Part shown: piece by piece, positions 5,739 to 58,590 of the stretch
Layout: each line of letters begins with the position of its first letter
Position numbering within the stretch: position 1 is the stretch's first letter
NCBI GenBank assembly: GCA_050084985.1
Contig: JBITNC010000001.1
Span: 164,238,001-164,302,000 of the forward strand
Length of the DNA stretch: 64,000 bases
Direction of reading: 5' to 3'
DNA from: Nageia nagi
Taxonomy: Eukaryota > Plantae > Pinophyta
The notes under the pieces: model-generated
Databases searched by the model: none
What the model was told of the DNA's origin: nothing
What the model saw: only the letters and a program-made list of their open reading frames with translations
Made by a program: the position numbers and the translations under genes

Positions 5739-7540
5739 TCAAAGGATGTTTCAGATAAAGTAAGAAATCATCATCATCATTATAAAATGCGTGTTCTATT
5801 TTTGCAAGTTTTTCATGTAATTGAGTGTTATACTTAGGTGAAGGCATTGGAGCGATTTGTGTAATAGAAGATTGGACAATGGGTTGTTGAGGCAATACTA
5901 CTGGTTGTGAAGCATAATGTGGATTGGTAGGTTCACTAGTGTTAGGGGGCGATAGAGGGGGTTATGGTGGAAGAATGTTGTTTTACAGGGAAGGTGAAGG
6001 TATAGGTTGTGGAATAGGTATTTGAGTTGCTTTCTTCAATTTGACTTCTTTTAGCTTTAATAAGGGACCAATTTTATTGGTTCTTTTTTCCTTTATATTA
6101 TCTAGCAAGTCAAATATGAAATCTAATTGTTGGTCATCAATGACATTTTCAAAGGTATTTAACTCTTGTGCCTCTATTAGAATATCAATTTTAATTTCAT
6201 ACTCCTCTTTTGTCCAATTAGGTTTCTTTTTAAAAGCTTTATTAATTAAAGCATTAATTTGATCATGCACATTTTCAGGTTTATCGAAATTAGTCATAAT
6301 ACCCTTACCGTTGTCATGATAGATGTAGTTATTGAGCTTACCTATTTCATGTTGTTCAGGAATATCTACCTGAGGCATCAAAGTATCATTGTTATGTACA
6401 TGATTATCCTTAGCTGGCACTATTTTAGGAACGCCAAAAGATTCTATTTCGATGGCATCAACGGTGTACGAATAACTAGGTACAAAATCAATGCTTTACC
6501 TTTTATTGATAAATACCCTATGTTTTGATGAACTTACATTTTCATATTGAAATAAAGATTTCAACAAAAGTAGAGTATTGGGCTATGACTCTAATAGCTC
6601 ATGCTATCAAAATATTCATAATAGCCTCAACATTGTTAGTAACAAAATATTCCATTCTATCATTTTGGGCCATCAATTCTTTAATAGATCTAACATTTGT
6701 AGGAATGACATCAAGATCATCATTTTCAATTCATTTTTAGACGTATCAGCAAAGCTTGCTTGATTTACACTTTCAAAATCACCATTAGCAAAGTCCATAT
6801 TAAACTTGTTAAGGGTTTGGCCAATGATGTTCATGCAACAACTAGAGTTTACATATTCAATTTCTTGTTCATTGGTTGCTATACAATCATGTGGATTGGG
6901 TTCACAAAATTCAAGAGGTATATCAGGGTTAATCCCAGTACTCCTAATTTCATCAAAATGAACCTTCCCTCTAGAAAACTTAGGTCACTCCTCAATGAAA
7001 AATATCTTTGGGATATAGGCATAACAAACCTTAAGTTTTATCATTTTGGTGGGTAACTACTTTAACAACATACAGTAAGGGAAGAAAGAGTAGTGCAAAG
7101 GGATTCATGACTCTCCAATGAAAGATGTCCTAGGGGGAAAGCCTAGGTGTGTAGGATCCATGTCGGGTTCACCATAAATGTAGAGAGTAAATTGTGTAAA
7201 CAATAAGTATAAACACAAAATAATTCTACAAAGATGACACTTATTCAAATACACAGATAAATAAATGAAAAATGTGCACCTGATTATGATGTGAAAATCC
7301 TCAAGGTATGGCAAGGGAACATGGAGGACTAGATCGGATCAGAGATGAACTTGACGATGATAACATGAATCATGTAAATCAACTATCATTGTCTCTTCTA
7401 TTTCTAGCTTTGTATCACAAATGCGCACACCATTGATGTGCAAGTTCTACAATGTTGTCATTGTAAGACTTGCAAAATTAGATTGCGCACATAAATATAA
7501 CATGTAATATAGCTCATATCATAACATATCCTCGAATAGG

Positions 7541-48011: not shown

Positions 48012-49200
48012 GTCATCATATACTCAAAGATTCTTTACAACTTTATAATTATTCCAAGGGAATCTTTAACAACTTGAATGTAATTTCCAACTTTTTCCTA
48101 TCCTGACAGAGAAGTAATTCTTTATCGTCAGCCTCCACATCCCATAACATAGGTATTGTATTTGGAATATACCCCATTTCCTTAATTTGACTTGATAGTT
48201 TCTCCAATTTTCTATAGATATCTTGTATTTGTGGGTGTGGTTAGTCTCCTATAAGAAAAGTATGTACCCTTTTGTTAAATTCCATCCAAATACATCCAGG
48301 TGTCTTCTTCATTCTTTTATCTTTCATTAATGTCATTAATCTTTGAACATTATTCCAACAAAAAAAGTATCATTTCCATAAATTCCCTCATTCCTACATT
48401 CTTATATGATATTCAAGTACCGATAATATACATCCACACATTTGATTTAGGTTTTATGGGCATATTGAAAATGAAGTTCAAAGCTTTCTCAAGATAGCCT
48501 ACATGGCCAAGAAGGTTAACAATAGATAATTATTCTTCTTAGAAATAATGCAATAAAATATTTTGTTATCAAGGTTGGTTCCCAAGTGCTTCATCATATC
48601 AAATAGTTTAATGGAATCCTTATTGTAGTCATGAATTACATATCCCCTAATCATTATAGTCCATGAAATTATGTCTAAATCATGCATCTTGTAAAAAAAC
48701 TTTTGATCCTTGTTTATTATTCCACTTTTTTCATACATTTTATCATGATGTTCATAACCACAAAATTAAATGAAAAGCCATTTTCAACTACTTTTTTATG
48801 GATATTTATACCTTCTTTGAGAGATACTATGGTGGCACATGCTAGAATAATGTTGGTAAAGGTTTCAAAGTTTGTCCTTACACCTAACAATTGCATTTTC
48901 TTAAAAGTATCTAGATCCTTTCCAAAAAAACCCATTTTTTGCATATCCTGGGATCATTGCAGTACATGAGATTGCATCTAGATGAGGTATTTTATCAAAT
49001 AATTAATGGGCCCTTTCAATGTATTCATTTTATGCATATACTATGATCATTGCAGTCCATGACACTTTGTTTGATTCATGCATCTTGTCAAACAATTTGT
49101 GTACCTTCTTTATGCTTCTATAACCATAACATTTTCTAGGTATCATAACCAAACTTTGAATAAGTCTATTTTGTATAAATTTGTTATTAGATAGGCCAAA
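48012..49200 (-). pseudogene. PLS-DYW class pentatricopeptide repeat pseudogene (continues at 45925-46045)
   Basis: PPR motifs ISWTIMIRGYVIHDYNKDSIKLFDMMK and TFTNIILACATIVSLKEGINIHKKVVENGF. E/E+ region PGCIWMEFNKRVHTFLIGD*PHPQ...MGYIPNT. Contains stops and deletions. Confidence 0.88.
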
Positions 49201-49229
49201 TTTCAATTTGATGCGATTGATAAGTGAAT

Positions 49230-49790
49230 GAACTTTCCATATAGAAGAGCATTATGGGTAATATTATGATTCCACCAAGCAAGACCAAGAGAGAAAAAGG
49301 CTTTCAAATACTATACCAATGCACTCTCTACATAGCCTTCAATTTCATGGTGGTTCATGAGGAAATATTCAAGGCCACCAAGGGAAAAAAGTTATTATAT
49401 ATTATAGACTTGAGGATACTGCAAGGCCTTCAGTGGTTGAAACTTATCAAAACATTATGTTCTAGAACAAAGAGTTCCCAAAGTATCAAACTCAAAACCA
49501 TGGGATCTAGATCCCCTTTAGATTTCAAGAAGTGGAAAATGGCTCTATCCAACAAAGACAAAACCCTAGGCATGCCCTTGGAATTCAATTGATAATAAAA
49601 CCTTTAAACCCCTCCATGTTGGATCCTTAATTTCTTCAACTCCAATATGGGGAAATCCTTCTTATAAATAATGTTTTATAGTTTCAAAATTTTTTGAAGG
49701 AGATCCAAAGTTATTTTCAATGTATTTTATGAAAAATCCACCATTTGAATCTATGCATTATGACTTTGTGGAGCAGGATGCCAACCAAAT
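49230..49790 (+). pseudogene. GRAS-domain transcription factor fragment (LHRI end, VHIID, LHRII, PFYRE start)
   Basis: Translation FQILYQCTLYIAFNF...LYIIDL...LQWLKLIKTLCSR...LGMPLEFN...GEILLINNVL...VEQDAN, with stops and frameshifts. Both ends are truncated. Confidence 0.85.
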
Positions 49791-50189: not shown

Positions 50190-50402
50190 ATCATGATCTT
50201 CTACAATTTGCATACATGGCTAGTAGAGCACTCACAACCACAACATTTGATGAAAAATTATGTTCAACTACTCTTTAATGGATGTCCATACCTTCTTGTA
50301 GAGCTCCCATAGTGGAATATGTTAGAAGAATATTGAAAAAGGTTGCAGAGCTTGACTTTATACTTGAGACATGCATTTGCAATCATGGCTATCAGAGGAC
50401 TC
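50190..50402 (-). pseudogene. PPR fragment, left flank of the Copia insertion
   Basis: Translation ATFFNILLTYSTMGALQEGMDIH*RVVEHNFSSNVVVVSALLAMYANC. Confidence 0.75.
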
Positions 50403-51073
50403 TGTTAGAATTTGTAATGAAATATTGTGAATATCTAAACTCCTTGTAAATTCAATTAATCACTTAAAGGATATTTAGATACCTTAAGAGATTAATTGAA
50501 TTCTTTATTATGTAAACTTTGACCTTACCATGTGGTTAGTTGGTAGGTTAAAGTTAGGTAATATATTTATTGTAACCCTAACCTTACCCTTGGGTTAAAG
50601 GGAGGTTAAGGAGGTGCTCTCATGATATAAATAGAGGGCCTCTCCTCTTGTAATATCACTTAGATTTTGAGTAAGATTACTCTACTAGTTTGTGTAGGAG
50701 AGAAAGGAATTGTAGTAAGAGGGTGCATAGTTTGAGAATTGAGATCTAGTTGTGGATGTACTCCCAAGGAGGGAGGAACCACTTATATTGGTGTTATCTT
50801 GTGTGAATGGTGTTATTAGCTTATAGATGTTGAATGATTAAGTTTCCTATAGTCTTGGACCTTGAGGATTAGTGTAGATCTAATTCCATCAATTGGTATT
50901 AGAGCTTGGTGTGGAAGCTTCTTCAACATTCTTTGAAACTTCTTCAATTTGGAGGTCTCCATTTCTCATCTTCTTACATTGTTGAGGATATTGTTGCAAA
51001 TCACTCCTTCCTTGTTGAATGTCTACTTTATCCGTCTCTCCATCACCCCTCATACAACACAGTGCAAATAAGA

Positions 51074-51527
51074 ATGCATGAGAAGGGGAAGGGCAAGAGG
51101 AAGGGGAAGGTGGAAATGAGGAGGATCGAGAATCCGATAAGCTGGTAGATCACATTCTCCAAATGCAAAGCGGGACTCTTCAAAAAGGCGGTAGAGCTCT
51201 CTTCTCTATGATGTCGACCTTGCCCTCATCATTTCCTCCCCATCCAGAAAACTCTACCACTCTCCCACTCCCAACCAAATGCTACCTCTGCCACCACCGC
51301 TCCACAACTGAATGCAACCTTTACCAGCTTTCTTTGAGTTTATGCCATCGTGGAAGAATTGTAAGTGCCCTGATGAGAGGCTATCTATGGCTTCATTATT
51401 AGACATCGTAGACTTGCCCCTCTTTGATTCTTGCAGACGTTGTTGTTGCATGGCCACTTATAAAACCTCCACCTTCACGTGTAGTGGGAACTTCTCTTTC
51501 CTCGCCACTCACCTCAGAGTCCCTTAA
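51074..51527 (+). pseudogene. MADS-box ORF inside the Copia leader (disrupted in this copy)
   Basis: Translation MHEKGKGKRKGKVEMRRIENPISW*ITFSKCKAGLFKKAVELS/LLYDVDLALIISSPSRKLYH is a complete MADS domain. It has one stop (51146-48) and a 2-bp loss in a CT run (~51200). The same frame continues through one TGA (51309-11) to TAA at 51525-27. Confidence 0.92.
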
Positions 51528-53208
51528 AATGGACCTCTCAACCCTTCGCACACATCACAGCCCTGCACCTCTGAACACGTTTTTTTTACTCATCATTTTT
51601 TTTTCTTTGAGTATGTTCTTTTAACTCTAAAGTGCATTAAAAAATGGGGGGAGGTGTTTCATTTATTTTGGTAGAAGATCATTAATGGCATTGAGTTTTC
51701 TTGTTGGATGAGAGACAATGCATTAATTTTTGAGTTGGAAATATTTTGTATTCTTTGCAAAGTCTCTCTAATGCTTTAATTTTTTTGGTAAGAAGCATTA
51801 ATTATTTGAAGTCAAACCTTGTTGGGTAGAAGTTTTTTTTTCCAAAAAGGAGGCTAATTTAATTTTGTTGAGCATGATAGTCAATCCTCATAAAGTTTTG
51901 ATAGGTACACACCTTACCTCTTGCAAGATGTGGTTGTCCAAAAATTAAAGTCTCTTTTCTCCATAAGTTTTATGAGCATGATATTTTTCTTACCTAAAAG
52001 AGGAAATTTTTTGGAGCTACATGATCAAGTATTTCTAAAATTTTCTTTCTTTAAGTTCAAATTAAATACTTATAGTGCCTTTTTTTTAAAGTAAGAAGGG
52101 GGAGAATTTAGTGCCTTTTTTGAAGTCATTAAATGTCAAGTTTGTTAATGCTTAACTTATGCATTTTTTAATTCTCTAAATGCTTAAACTAATGCTAAAG
52201 TAGGACTTAAGCGTTGTCTATGAATTCATGATTTATGCCAAGTATAAATGGACTTATTCATTAAATGTTAAGTTATGAATAAACCCTAGGCATTCTTTGC
52301 TAAGTGATTTATGACATTTCTTTTTACTAGTCATGAGTAGGACTTAGAACATTTAAAAATGAATTCATGCTAAGTATAGAACTTATGCAATTTTTTTTTA
52401 AAATTAATGAATGGATTAATGCTAAGTAGGACTTAGCCATTTTAAATTCATTAAAGTGTTGAATGAATTTATGAACTTGAGCAAGTATGCAAAATGTAAA
52501 AATGTCCTTTAGGGGTTAGTACAAAACCCATTGGACTCTTATATTTCAAGTTCTTGTGGATGATGTATTTTTAATACTTTACTTTATATTTTTGCATAAT
52601 TGCTCTATACTTGCAAAATGCAAAATATTGAAAGTAACCCCTAAAATGAACACATCCGCACGTACTTTTCCACAACATGACTTGTTTGGGGAGCCACAAG
52701 GGGAGGATAGGGCAGACTAGAGCCTTTTTAGTCCGAAGAACCAAGTGGTGGTAAATCCATCTTAATTGCCCCTAAGACCTCTGTTGGATTGGACATAACT
52801 CTATTAGGTGGATAGGCATGTGTGTAGTGATACCACATGTCCGCACATCCATTCAGGGATTATCCTGATAACCTAGGAGGAAAACTTGAAAACCTTAAAC
52901 AAGATAATTAAAATGGTCGGTCCAACATACGTCGGATCCTTGGAAAATAGTTGGTACTTCTCCTTGAGAGAGTATATTACTGAACAAGGTGAACTGGTTG
53001 AGGACTGGTAGTACTTGGGCTCCACTTTGCGGGCATCTAGGTGAAGGCCTAATTCTATTCAAGAAAACAACCTCAACTTTATCCTTCTACGGATCTTGGT
53101 TATAAGTTTGCACATGTGGGACATGTTTACTTATCAATGTTTAATTTGTATAGATGGTAAATTGTAGAAATTTATTCATTCTTCTTGCTTATTTACTTTT
53201 GTGTAGCA

Positions 53209-56200
53209 ATGGTTGAAACCTTCATACCCAAGCATATACTCGACGGTTCCAACTTTGGCATATGGGAACCTCGTATGAAAGCTAAGTTACAAGTAAGGAA
53301 GCTATGGCAGATAGTTAATGAAGACTTGGTTGCTCCTACAGATGAGAAGGCTCTTGAAATCTACAACTCAAAGAATGAGTTAGCAACTTTAATGATTTAT
53401 CATGCAGTTTCAGATGATGTACTTCTCATGATCTCTTCTTCAACATCAACAAAGGAAGCTTGGGATAGGCTGAAGAAAATTTACCTTGGGTCAAAATTTT
53501 CAAGGAGGTTCACTATTTTACAAAAGGTGTTGCAATATCGTTAAGGTGAAGATGAAAGTGCTTCTATTTACTTGACCAAAATCATTGACCTCAGGACACA
53601 ACTGGTTGGCTGTGGGTGCAACTGGATCAATGATGAGTTCATGGTCTTCATCATTCTTCAAAGCCTTTCTACAAAGTTTAGTAACTTTGTCACGGTTATG
53701 GAAACTAGGCTCGATGATGAAGAAGATGTCATCTCTCTTGATAACCTTTCTAGACTCCTTCTGAAGCATGAGGAAACTTTGAATAAGAAAATGTTGAAAT
53801 TTTCCCCAAAGGACAAAAGCATTGCTCTAGGAGCAACCAAAACTCCTTTCAAGAAGAAGTTCAAACATTATAAATCCAAAGATAACAAATCCTCATCTAC
53901 CTTCAGGAAGCATGAGAAAAAGGGCAACAATAATGACAACTTTAAGCAAAGGAATGACAAAGCTGGATCAAGCAATCCAAAACCTAAGGAAAAGTTTGAT
54001 GGAAATTGTAACTTTTGTGGCATCTTTGGTCACAAATAGTATGATTATTATAAAAATAAATTTGCTGAAAAAGGCAAGGGAAATGCAAATGTGAAAAATT
54101 TCATAATAAAAAGAAGACCAAGCATGCTGCTACTATTGCCTACTACTTAGTGACTCAAGCTATTTCAAATGATTGGATTGTTGATTCAGGATGCACTAAT
54201 CACATGTGTTATGAAAAGGATAAGTTTGAAAACTTTCATAAGTACAAGAAGGATGCAGTTGTGATAGGTGATAATTCAGTCCTTGATGTTCAAGGAATAG
54301 GGAGTGTGAAGATTCATGGAAAGGTTCTTGATAATGTCTTTTATGTGCCTAAACTAAGGATGAATCTTATCTTCGTAATTCAGATTATAAGGAAAGGATA
54401 CTCATTTGAGTTTACCTCACACTCCTGGTGTGTTAAGAAAGGACTTGCCACCTTGATGAAAGGATCAGTAAAGGATGACCTTTATATTGTGGATCAAGTT
54501 CCTTCAAAGATGTGTCTTGCTACAAATGTTTGTTCAAAGGGTAATCTTTGGCATCAACGATTAGGGCACCTTAACCACAAGAGTATTCAAGATATGAAAA
54601 ATCAAGAACTTGTGGAAGGTTTACCTAATATTTCACCCACAATTGGTCTCTGTGAAAGGTGCATTCTAGGAAAGATGAATAGGCAAAATTTTGAAAAAGA
54701 TAAGGCAACTTGGGCTACTCGTCCTCTTCAACTTGTGCATTCAGATTTGATGGCTCCATTTCAGACTAAGTCTCTAGGGGGAGCTTCTTATGTTCTAACC
54801 TTCATTGATGACTTCAGCAAGATGACATTTGGTTATCTACTTGAGCACAAGGATCAAACTTTTGATAGGTTTAAATACTTCAAGGCTCTTGTTGAAAATC
54901 AAACTGATTTTAAGATCAAGATGCTGAGATTTGATAATGGGGGTGAGTATAATAGCAATGAGTTTAACAACTATTGTGTTAAACATGGGATCAAGCAACA
55001 ATTCACAATCCCTTACACCCCTCAACAAAATGGAGTTGGTGAAAGGAAGAATCGAACCATTATGGAAATGGCAAGGTGCATGTTGGGTAACCTTCCTAGT
55101 TTCTTATGGGGTGAAGCTATTCACACTGCTATTCACACCCTAAATAGGTGTCCTACTAAAGCAGTTGAAGGTAAAACTCCATATGAAGCATGGACAGGAA
55201 AGAAACCTAACATCTCACACTTTAGGGTCTTCAGTTGTGATGCATTTGCCTTTATTACCTCAGAGAAAAGAAATAAGTTGGATAAAAGATTAGAAAAATG
55301 CATCTTTGTGGGATATGATAATCAGTATAAAGGTTATAGGCTCTACTCCTCATCCCATAAAATAGTCTTTGTTTCTAGGGATGTCAAGTTCAATGAACTT
55401 CCTGAGGATATGACTTCTCATGCTGAGGTGTCTAATTCAGATGATTCTTCGCCTACACCTAACTGGTTGGAAGATAATGTAGGGAAGTCACCATAAGAGC
55501 AAAATTCTTCAGCTCAGAGAATTACAAGGAATATGACCTTGAATAAATCTTTATTTGCCAAAATTGATAATACGAATGATCCATCAACCTTCAAAGAAGC
55601 TTCCAAGCAAGAGTGTTGGATGGAAGCTATGAAAGTTGAGTATGAGGCACCCATGAAAAATGAAACTTGGGATTTGGTTCATTATCCCAATGAGAAAAAT
55701 ATGATTGGAAATAAATGGATATACAAGGTCAAGTACAATTCTGATGGAGAAATTGAAAAATACAAAGCAAGGTTAGTGGCCAAAGGATTCACTCAAAAAT
55801 ATGGTATTGATTATGAGAAAACCTTTGCTCCTATGGCCAAGATGCCTACTGTCAGGATAATCCTTGCTCTTTCTATAGCTCAAGGATGGAAATTTTTTCA
55901 ACTTGATGTCAAGAGTGCATTTCTCAATGGTGACTTGGATGTAGAAATCTACATGAATCAACCAGAAGGATTTATTCCAGAAGGTAAAGAGTCTTTTGTG
56001 TGCAAGCTAAAGAAGTATTTGTATGGACTTAAGCAAGCACCTAGAGCATGGTACAAGAAAATTTCAGGATTCTTTGCAGATATTGGTTTTTCCAAGTGCT
56101 TCGCTGACTTAGATCTCTATGTACTCAATCAAGGAAAAGACGTGGTCTTAATTCTCCTTTATGTGGATGATCTTCTCATAACTGGAAATAATATTGAAAT

Positions 56201-57130
56201 CATCCAAGAGTGCATATCCAAACTGAAGGCAACATTTGAAATGACTGATCTAGGTCTATTGCATTACTATCTTAGGATGCAAGTATACCAACACAAAGAT
56301 TGTACTTATCTTAGTCAATCTAAGTATATATCAGACATCTTGCAAAAGTTTGGAATGGAGGAGTATAGATATGTTGTAATACGTATTTCTCCTGGAATCG
56401 TTGTATCTCTGAGCTTAGATTCTCAGTTGGCTGATGCTACAACTTATAGGTAATTGATCGGTAGTCTTCTGTATCTGACTATCTGTCGACCTGATATTGC
56501 CTTTGCAGTGAATCTAATGGCACGATTCATGCAAAAACCATATGTTGAGCACCTCAATGCTGTTAAGCAAATCTTGACATGAGGTATGTGGCAGGGATAA
56601 AGGATCTTGCTCTTAAGTATTCCAAAGTGCCCTCGATTATTCTCTTCAGGTTCTTAGATTCTGATTATGGGGGAGATAGAGATGATAGAAAATCAACCTC
56701 TGCATATGTGTTCAGCATTGGTTCAAGTGCTATCTCTTGGGCTTCCAAGAAGCAACCTACTATGACTCTTTCTACCACCGAAGCCAAATATCGAGCCATT
56801 TCTGTTGCTGCCTAAGAAGCTATTTGGCTATGGTATCTTCTGAACAAAATTGGGTATGAGCAAAATGGCCCATCTGTTATTTCTTCAGATAATCAATCGG
56901 CTATCTCTTTGGCTAAGAATCCTATGTTCCATCAGAGAACCAAACATGTGGAAATCCAAGCCCATTTTATCAGGGAGAAGGTTCTAGATGACATCATACA
57001 CTTGGAGTATTGTCCATCTACTGTAAACTTTGCTAATTTATTCACCAAGCCCCTTCCTGAAGCTCAGTTCAGCAAGCTTAGGGATTCTCTCGGGTTGGTG
57101 AAGTTGCCCTCAAGGGGGAGTGAAGTTTGA
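53209..57130 (+). pseudogene. Copia gag-pol polyprotein (GAG-PR-INT-RT-RH), disrupted
   Basis: Motifs LDGSNFGIWEPRMKAKL, knuckle CNFCGIFGHK, protease WIVDSGCTNHM, WHQRLGHLN/CERCILGK, integrase VHSDL/DNGGEY/ERKNRT, RT YVDDLL, RNase H DSDYGGD/DNQSAI/HQRTKH. Stops at ~53542, 54037, 55494, 56451 and 56813, plus frameshifts. Confidence 0.95.
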
Positions 57131-57202
57131 ACTTTTGTTAGTGATGACAACTTCACCTCTAAGAGGCCTTTTTTTTATTGTTATATAGTGTTGATTATGA
57201 TA

Positions 57203-57295
57203 TACCTCTGTGGTAAGTTCGCTCTGTGTGAGGAACTTCTTGTACATTTTATACCTCTGTGGTAAGTTTGCTCTGCGTGAGAAACTTGTTGTACA
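57203..57295. repeat. ~49-bp tandem duplication in the Copia 3' non-coding region
   Basis: TACCTCTGTGGTAAGTTYGCTCTGYGTGAGRAACTTSTTGTACA occurs twice. Confidence 0.85.
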
Positions 57296-58370
57296 ATTTT
57301 TTGAGCATATAATTGATCAATAAGTTTCATTGTTCAAGTATTCATATGAGAAGATCTAGTATGTGTCTTTAGGCATTGTACAGTCATCTATATGTTATGC
57401 TCTATTAATAATCAACACATGTCTATATACAACAGGTGACTATGAGTGATGGCTTGGCATCTCCGTGATGACTTATAGTGCACCATTGATTAGTTATTTA
57501 TAATATGGCATTATTTGATTCTCTTATTAATAAAATGAATATATGTTGCATCTAACTAATTTTGTTCATGAGTTGCTTGTAGCATGCAGGATCTTCTTCA
57601 GAAATGTAGGTTACTCACCTTGTGTAAGCAAGCTCATGGAGACTCACATGTCAGCTTAAAGTTGATCGACTACTATGTACAGTGAAACTAGTTGTGGTTA
57701 ATGATTGTATTGTAAACCATTTTGTCAAATGGTAATGTAGTGAGTCTCAAACTAGTTCTCAAAAAGATTCTCAAATATGTAAATGTTCTCATCTCCGCTT
57801 GTATCTCTATGGAGGAGAACTCTCTCTTACTCTCTCTCTTCTCTCTTCTACGCTCTATCCCAATATTGCATTAAGGGGGAGTGTTAGAATTTGTAATGAA
57901 ATATTGTGAATATCTAAACTCCTTGTAAATTCAATTAATCACTTAAAGGATATTTAGATACCTTAAGGGATTAATTGAATTCTTTATTATGTAAACTTTG
58001 ACCTCACCATGTGATTAGTTGGTAGGTTAAAGTTAGGTAATATATTTATTGTAACCCTAACCTTAACCTTGGGTTAAAGGGAGTTTAGGGAGGTGCTCTC
58101 ATGCTATAAATAGAGGGCCTCTCCTCTTGTAATATCACTTAGATTTTGAGTAAGATTACTCTACTAGTTTGTGTAGGAGAGAAAGGAATTGTAGTAAGAG
58201 GGTGCATAGTTTGAGAATTGAGATCTAGTTGTGGATGTACTCCCAAGGAGGGAGGAACCACTTATATTGGTGTTATCTTGTGTGAATGGTGTTATTAGCT
58301 TGTAGATGTTGAATGATTAAGTTTCCTATAGTCTTGGACCTTGAGAATTAGTGTAGATCTAATTCCTTCA

Positions 58371-58590
58371 AACTCACAACCATAAGATTTGATGAAAACC
58401 CATTTTCAACTACTCTTTAATGGATATTCATACCCTCTTGTAGGGCTTCCATGGTGTCACATATTGGAATAATATCAGTAAAGGTTGTAAAGTTTGACTT
58501 TAGACCTGCATCTTCTTAAAAGTATCTAGAGCCTTCAAAAAACCTATTTTGTGCATATCTTATGATCATTGCAATCTATAAAATTATATC
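58371..58590 (-). pseudogene. PPR fragment, right flank of the Copia insertion
   Basis: Translation MEALQEGMNIH*RVVENGFSSNLMVVS, which joins across the TSD to PLIAM on the left flank. Confidence 0.75.

Follow-up and report, generated by a model that had tools for sequence, protein, structure and literature searches.

A MADS box is a conspicuous thing to meet inside a retrotransposon. In a stretch of 64,000 nucleotides of the Nageia nagi genome, which was analyzed as a whole and is here called the window, such a box lies in the leader of a Ty1/Copia element, between the primer binding site and gag. Is it a gene that the family of this element carries as its own, or a piece of a host gene that has come to lie in the element? 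A first-pass annotation of the locus proposed the former, i.e., that the active family may have transposed with an intact MADS accessory gene. We addressed this question by defining the borders and coding state of the element, the identity of the box and its lesions, the presence of the box in related elements and in public reads, and the composition of the leader in which it lies.

The element itself is well defined. LTRs, target-site duplication (TSD), primer site, and Pfam domains delimit a Ty1/Copia LTR retrotransposon at 50403–58370 of the window (Table 1). It displays TG...CA LTRs with a 5-bp TSD, a primer binding site and a polypurine tract, and a gag-pol region in which the Pfam domains follow one another in the Copia order: Retrotran_gag_2, Pol_BBD, gag_pre-integrs, rve, SH3_retrovirus, and RVT_2. 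There are 10 mismatches between the two LTRs over 489 nt (97.96% identity). An LTR divergence of ~0.021 puts the age at between ~0.8 and several million years under commonly used substitution rates, according to which of them is assumed. The copy is dead, since its internal region, in which the gag ATG is at 53209, is split into at least five stop-free pieces. When the window was searched for further copies of the LTR, leader, or gag-pol, none was found beyond the element itself. Between pol and the 3′ LTR, there is a tandem repeat of a 49-nt unit (two copies with 90% identity, 57201–57298). The sequences flanking the element on either side (50230–50366 and 58372–58508) are 80% alike, which indicates that the Copia element sits between two copies of a ~170-nt unit, and the left flank (50200–50399) is high-copy in public reads.

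Table 1. Features of the Copia element and of its leader (window coordinates)
Feature	Position	Strand	Basis or remark
Left target-site duplication, GACTC	50398..50402	.	Read from the sequence; partner AACTC at 58371-58375, 4/5 match
5′ LTR, 489 nt, TG...CA	50403..50891	+	97.96% identity with 57882-58370
Conserved first part of the leader, ends in GAGG	50892..50994	+	Homology to L003 over 50893-50973 and to L008 over 50941-51000
Primer binding site TGGTATTAGAGC, tRNA-iMet type, one transition	50894..50905	+	Same motif in L003 and L008
GC- and CpG-richer island with the MADS box, specific to this copy or to a rare sub-lineage	50995..51600	+	Composition, relatives, depth
(GAAGGG)5.5 microsatellite, encodes KGKGKRKGK	51082..51115	+	Tandem Repeats Finder
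MADS-box (SRF-TF) homology	51104..51260	+	Pfam PF00319, two collinear pieces; PDB matches
Post-box sequence	51261..51527	+	TGA at 51309-51311; 71-codon ORF at 51312-51527; no known-protein match
AT-rich leader stretch, rest of the variable zone	51601..52100	+	Little or no homology to relatives (blastn); depth 82-850
Family-conserved distal leader	52101..53208	+	77-90% identity with L001-L003, 68-81% with L006-L009
gag-pol, Copia order, at least five stop-free pieces	53209..57130	+	Pfam
Polypurine tract AAGGGGGAG	57873..57881	+	Directly 5′ of the 3′ LTR
3′ LTR, 489 nt	57882..58370	+	Pair of 50403-50891

The box is a genuine MADS box, and it is broken. Because a stop interrupts its frame, its pieces were run separately through Pfam. 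A 20-aa piece (51149–51208) matches profile positions 10–29 of SRF-TF with an E value of 8.8e-8 and 31.9 bits, to be read against a curated cut-off of 26 bits, and the piece at 51195–51308 matches positions 27–47, collinear with the first (E 0.0068, 16.3 bits). Chance likeness to MADS is ruled out by the Pfam score. The PDB matches to the 20-aa piece are to MADS proteins only (SRF, MEF2, MCM1, and SEP3), and they do not separate type I from type II MADS. Together with the LTRs and the primer site, the Pfam and PDB matches thus confirm what the first-pass annotation had described, namely a MADS box between the primer binding site and gag of a Copia element with matched LTRs and a TSD. The box is in sense orientation relative to the element and has an upstream ATG. 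Its frame is interrupted by a TAG at 51146–51148 and by a frame change within a CT run at 51196–51207, and a further stop, the TGA at 51309–51311, is found downstream of the box. Translations place the stop, the slip in the CT run, and the later TGA where the annotation had located them. The basic KGKGKRK stretch that it had reported upstream of the box is present as well, but it is encoded by a (GAAGGG)5.5 microsatellite.

Beyond the box, there is little that resembles a gene. The I region and K-box that follow the box in MIKC-type MADS genes are not seen here: the stop-free stretches of 51082–51621, on both strands, contain neither a K-box nor any other Pfam domain, and the sequence after KLYH (51260) matches nothing in protein families or among database proteins. 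Protein searches with short queries returned no candidate homologue for the 71-aa ORF that follows the box or for an 80-aa ORF that ends at its start, a 38-aa piece of the box, likewise a short query, had 0 matches against 1.84 billion representatives, and the ESM Atlas gave no usable lead for the box piece or the post-box piece. None of these searches yielded a donor gene, but with pieces this short, and with the length limits in force, such blanks carry little weight. Within the island around the box, the stretch that stays open longest, 106 codons, is in a non-MADS frame. The single ORF of about 150 codons that the annotation obtained by reverting the lesions is therefore no evidence of coding; it is a product of arithmetic.

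If the box were an accessory gene of the family, it would be expected at the same position in other members. We scanned metagenome contigs with the integrase ORF and obtained 55 related loci. L001–L003 belong to the same family as the window element, with LTRs that are 92 to 95% identical (the LTRs of L003 fall in this range), a distal leader that is 90% identical, and an internal region that is 82% identical, and L006–L009 are more distant relatives with 76 to 81% identity. No MADS sequence was found in the 55 related loci, either by blastn or by tblastn, with translations read through with X at breaks; the box is missing from the sisters L001–L003 and from the relatives L006–L009, and the same position in other members is not occupied by it. 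For L003 and L008, the alignments define where the difference lies. Homology with the window extends from the LTR across the primer site as far as ~50973–51000 and stops there, and in a sensitive blastn comparison, it restarts at 52103 for L003 and at ~52005 for L008. The corresponding interval measures 1.5 kb in L003 and 2.1 kb in L008, and these two sequences are unrelated to the window or to each other.

Public reads give a second view of the family. We placed Logan contigs of four public runs on 50200–56199 of the window, skipping 51075–51119 as a repeat; the word depths that result are not to be equated with copy numbers. In the DNA runs X1, X2, and X9 (organisms A, B, and D), summed word depths reach 1e4 to 1.4e6 over the LTR, the leader from ~52400 (52400–53200), and gag-pol. 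At 51000–51399, word depth is 11 to 27, 2 to 13, and 0 to 4 in these runs, respectively, and over the whole island at 50995–51600, it is 0 to 53. In the three DNA runs, the MADS stretch is thus three to five orders of magnitude below the LTR and gag-pol. Organism D has the most family sequence, yet it has essentially nothing at 51200–51599. Each of the 20 runs with part of the leader contains at most 0.47 of the leader words, a share that corresponds to the high-copy part, which makes up ~0.40 of the leader. The depth falls where the homology to the sisters ends, which is consistent with the bulk of the family being without the MADS stretch. A depth of ~10 in runs of apparently low coverage could nonetheless equal tens of copies, as of a small sub-lineage transposing with the box. 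A separate feature concerns the lysine-rich end of gag at 53600–54199, which in the probable RNA run X8 is 20 to 100 times deeper than the rest of gag-pol; this is likely due either to matches of low complexity or to some transcript, sub-genomic or otherwise.

An active family with an intact MADS accessory gene is therefore not what we found, since the sisters and relatives are without the box, depth shows a gap over it, and unrelated inserts occupy its place. The annotation had itself named a MADS segment confined to this one copy as the result that would tell against its proposal, and in spirit, this is the situation, save for a possible rare sub-lineage that moves the box.

We then considered the leader as a whole. 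It is 2315 nt long in the window, 2774 nt in L003, and 3450 nt in L008. The island at 50995–51600 has a GC content of 0.47 and a CpG observed/expected ratio of 0.45, compared with ratios of 0 to 0.18 in the body of the element and 0.25 in the whole window. It is compositionally foreign and less decayed than the element that hosts it. It is also patchy, with 51400–51600 occurring in up to 10 distinct contigs of run X1 at a summed depth greater than that of the box, and it has the look of a mosaic. No terminal inverted repeats, TSD, or poly(A) were found around it, which makes a nested classical transposon or a tailed retrocopy unlikely.

Two sets of splice-like signals frame the AT-rich leader. 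A donor-like GAG|GTAAA lies ~115 nt past the primer site in L003 (5497) and L008 (~3920), two diverged relatives, and an acceptor-like TTGTGTAG at 53199–53206, 2 to 4 bases before the gag ATG, is common to the window, L008, and L006. With signals of this kind at its two ends, the leader looks like an intron, and the sequences suggest that a leader intron of 2 to 3 kb, with a variable first part, may be conserved in this lineage. It is precisely at the GAGG of the donor-like site that the homology of the window to its relatives breaks off, and the island thus appears to have replaced the start of the putative intron. GC-rich islands are present elsewhere in the AT-rich leaders of relatives, at 6036–6262 in L003 and at ~4311–5200 in L008. 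These have no Pfam match and hence cannot be called gene fragments. The one in the sister L003 is a block of ~81% GC made of repeats like GGCCCGCGGCCACCTAGGGCTCGCGCGGCCAG.

The reads also contain a second version of the box. Organisms A and B, the latter also in its probable RNA run X8, have a contig over 51120–51244 that is ~94% like the window, with 7 letter differences and 2 gaps in this interval. At the three differing places that were listed (51192, 51208, and 51209), the T, A, and T of the window are C, G, and C in the contig, and to that extent, the annotation's reading of the lesions as C-to-T-type decay finds support. Through one of the differences, the contig has a Cys codon, the usual state in MADS boxes, in place of a TAT codon of the window. 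Organism A has the variant only, and organism B has both the variant and the window form at similar depth. In run X8, the depth of the variant is 48 and that of the window form ~9, and there is almost nothing at 51400–51599. The depth of the box in this run is about that of gag-pol, in contrast to the DNA runs, in which the box is thousands of times lower. A box as deep as gag-pol suggests that X8 is really RNA and that the variant is transcribed. On the simplest reading of the two sequences, the variant would represent the donor gene of the host, or else a close paralogue of it, with the window copy having taken its transitions later, and it could also be a sister element.

Taken together, these findings lead us to the view that the box is probably a fragment of a host MADS gene that was captured by a single Copia element or a rare sub-lineage, in whose non-coding leader it is carried as passive cargo. 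Homology to a host gene is found inside the borders of the element and is missing from its sisters, as expected of a captured fragment. It is the identity of the domain and the composition of the island that point to a host gene as the putative source. The captured piece would comprise the DNA-binding box of ~57 codons and some flank, within a mosaic island of ~0.6 to 1 kb. It would have found a permissive site in a leader that is 2.3 to 3.5 kb long, AT-rich, and intron-like, the first 1 to 2 kb of which, past the primer-site region, is hypervariable and seems to tolerate foreign inserts; relatives hold different, unrelated GC-rich islands in the same zone. The MADS piece would stand outside the gene set of the family, broken, and in a copy whose gag-pol is dead. 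Candidate routes of capture are 1) template switching by the reverse transcriptase onto a co-packaged host RNA and 2) filler DNA during break repair, and the breakpoint at the donor-like GAGG is a hint of an event at the RNA level. Once captured, the fragment would have decayed with the element, presumably by C-to-T transitions in methylated DNA, and any present effect would be an indirect one, by cross-talk with the donor gene at the level of small RNAs or methylation.

Other histories have to be weighed against this one. The island might have entered this copy only after integration, either as break-repair filler or as a small nested non-autonomous element, and so would never have been mobilized by Copia. 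Its absence from relatives and its very low depth fit such a late entry, as do its mosaic look, with parts that differ in depth and in contig counts, and a CpG ratio above that of the element body, which is what a late arrival should have. We nevertheless regard this as unlikely, given that no TIR, TSD, or poly(A) flanks the island, that the island stands in place of family sequence instead of being a mere addition, and that the two versions of the box diverge by ~6%, more than the 2% between the LTRs. The same excess means that the box may predate the insertion, and it can accordingly be enlisted for a different history, in which the window copy is the decayed descendant of a rare sub-lineage that transposed together with an intact MADS ORF, a functioning accessory gene. 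A less decayed version of the box does exist in two organisms and is deeper than the window form in the probable RNA run, and the sense orientation of the box and its upstream ATG are in keeping with a working gene. Yet neither the relatives fetched nor the bulk of the family have the box, which also goes undetected in organism D, the run with the highest family depth. Moreover, the post-box sequence is unlike any protein, 51400–51600 differs from the box in copy number, the MADS frame is no more open than other frames of the island, and the second version may be nothing other than the host donor gene. An accessory gene of this kind is, in our judgment, quite improbable.

A further idea is that the MADS frame is joined to Gag by splicing from a GTAAGT at 51361 to the AG at 53205–53206, which would yield a MADS-Gag fusion protein. 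The geometry is right, in that an exon up to 51360 would stop one base into a codon and the CA and gag ATG past the AG would continue in frame, and the acceptor-like TTGTGTAG is kept in L008 and L006. However, two stops and the slip lie upstream of the donor, the donor itself is in copy-specific sequence, and a GTAAGT within ~1 kb is not rare by chance. For the probable RNA run X8, the 51360–53207 joint is not among the joints listed, and some of its contigs fall within the supposed intron. We consider the fusion extremely improbable. That a small, lineage-restricted sub-family now mobilizes an intact MADS ORF in its leader exon, translated alone or spliced in frame to Gag, with the variant as the active copy and not the host donor gene, strikes us as very unlikely; if it were true, the element would bear a transcription factor or a dominant-negative MADS partner.

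Capture of a host-gene fragment thus remains our preferred explanation, and it makes the locus a new instance of a known phenomenon, an LTR retrotransposon with a scrap of a host gene. Gene-fragment capture by LTR elements has been surveyed in rice, sorghum, and gymnosperm genomes (PMC13317346; PMC13477047), and its mechanisms have been reviewed (PMC13317346). Gymnosperm genomes contain ~400,000 captured coding fragments each, Copia examples included, and small-RNA or methylation cross-talk of captured exons with the donor gene has been discussed (PMC13477047). As in such transduplication, the window element has a short piece of a host gene in its internal region that is missing in sisters, foreign in composition, and decayed; the difference is that the piece is a MADS box and that it is placed right where a long intron-like leader begins. 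Maize Bs1 is a Copia-like LTR retrotransposon with captured host-gene pieces between its LTRs, in sense orientation. It is non-autonomous and expressed, its captured pieces come from three enzyme genes, and it has been proposed to contain a reading frame that is chimeric with gag. The window element, by contrast, keeps a full, although dead, gag-pol, and its fragment is broken. SIRE/Maximus elements of the Copia group have an env-like extra ORF after pol that is conserved across the lineage, whereas the extra sequence described here lies before gag and is missing from relatives. Retroviruses transduce cellular transcription-factor genes as gag fusions, and the likeness, a piece of a host transcription-factor gene near the gag of a reverse-transcribing element, may be taken as an analogy only, the frame in the window being broken. 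Pack-MULEs and other DNA transposons also carry pseudogene-like fragments of regulatory genes with possible small-RNA cross-talk (PMC13317346; PMC13477047), but they belong to another class of element, capture at the DNA level, and have terminal inverted repeats.

The locus carries a lesson for annotation, which is that a conspicuous domain in a transposon does not amount to an accessory gene unless sister copies share it. It also draws attention to a Copia lineage with a long, intron-like leader, the first part of which may be a tolerant landing zone for foreign DNA. A fragment of a regulatory gene that resides in a methylated element could, in turn, contribute to cross-talk with its donor gene by way of small RNAs or methylation.

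The MADS box is not the only scrap of a transcription-factor gene near this Copia element. Some 800 nt before the 5′ LTR, at 49254–49589 on the plus strand, there is a decayed fragment of a GRAS domain (Pfam PF03514, E 4.8e-14, profile positions 75–179 of 374), and a weak PPR scrap is found at 49033–49206 on the minus strand.
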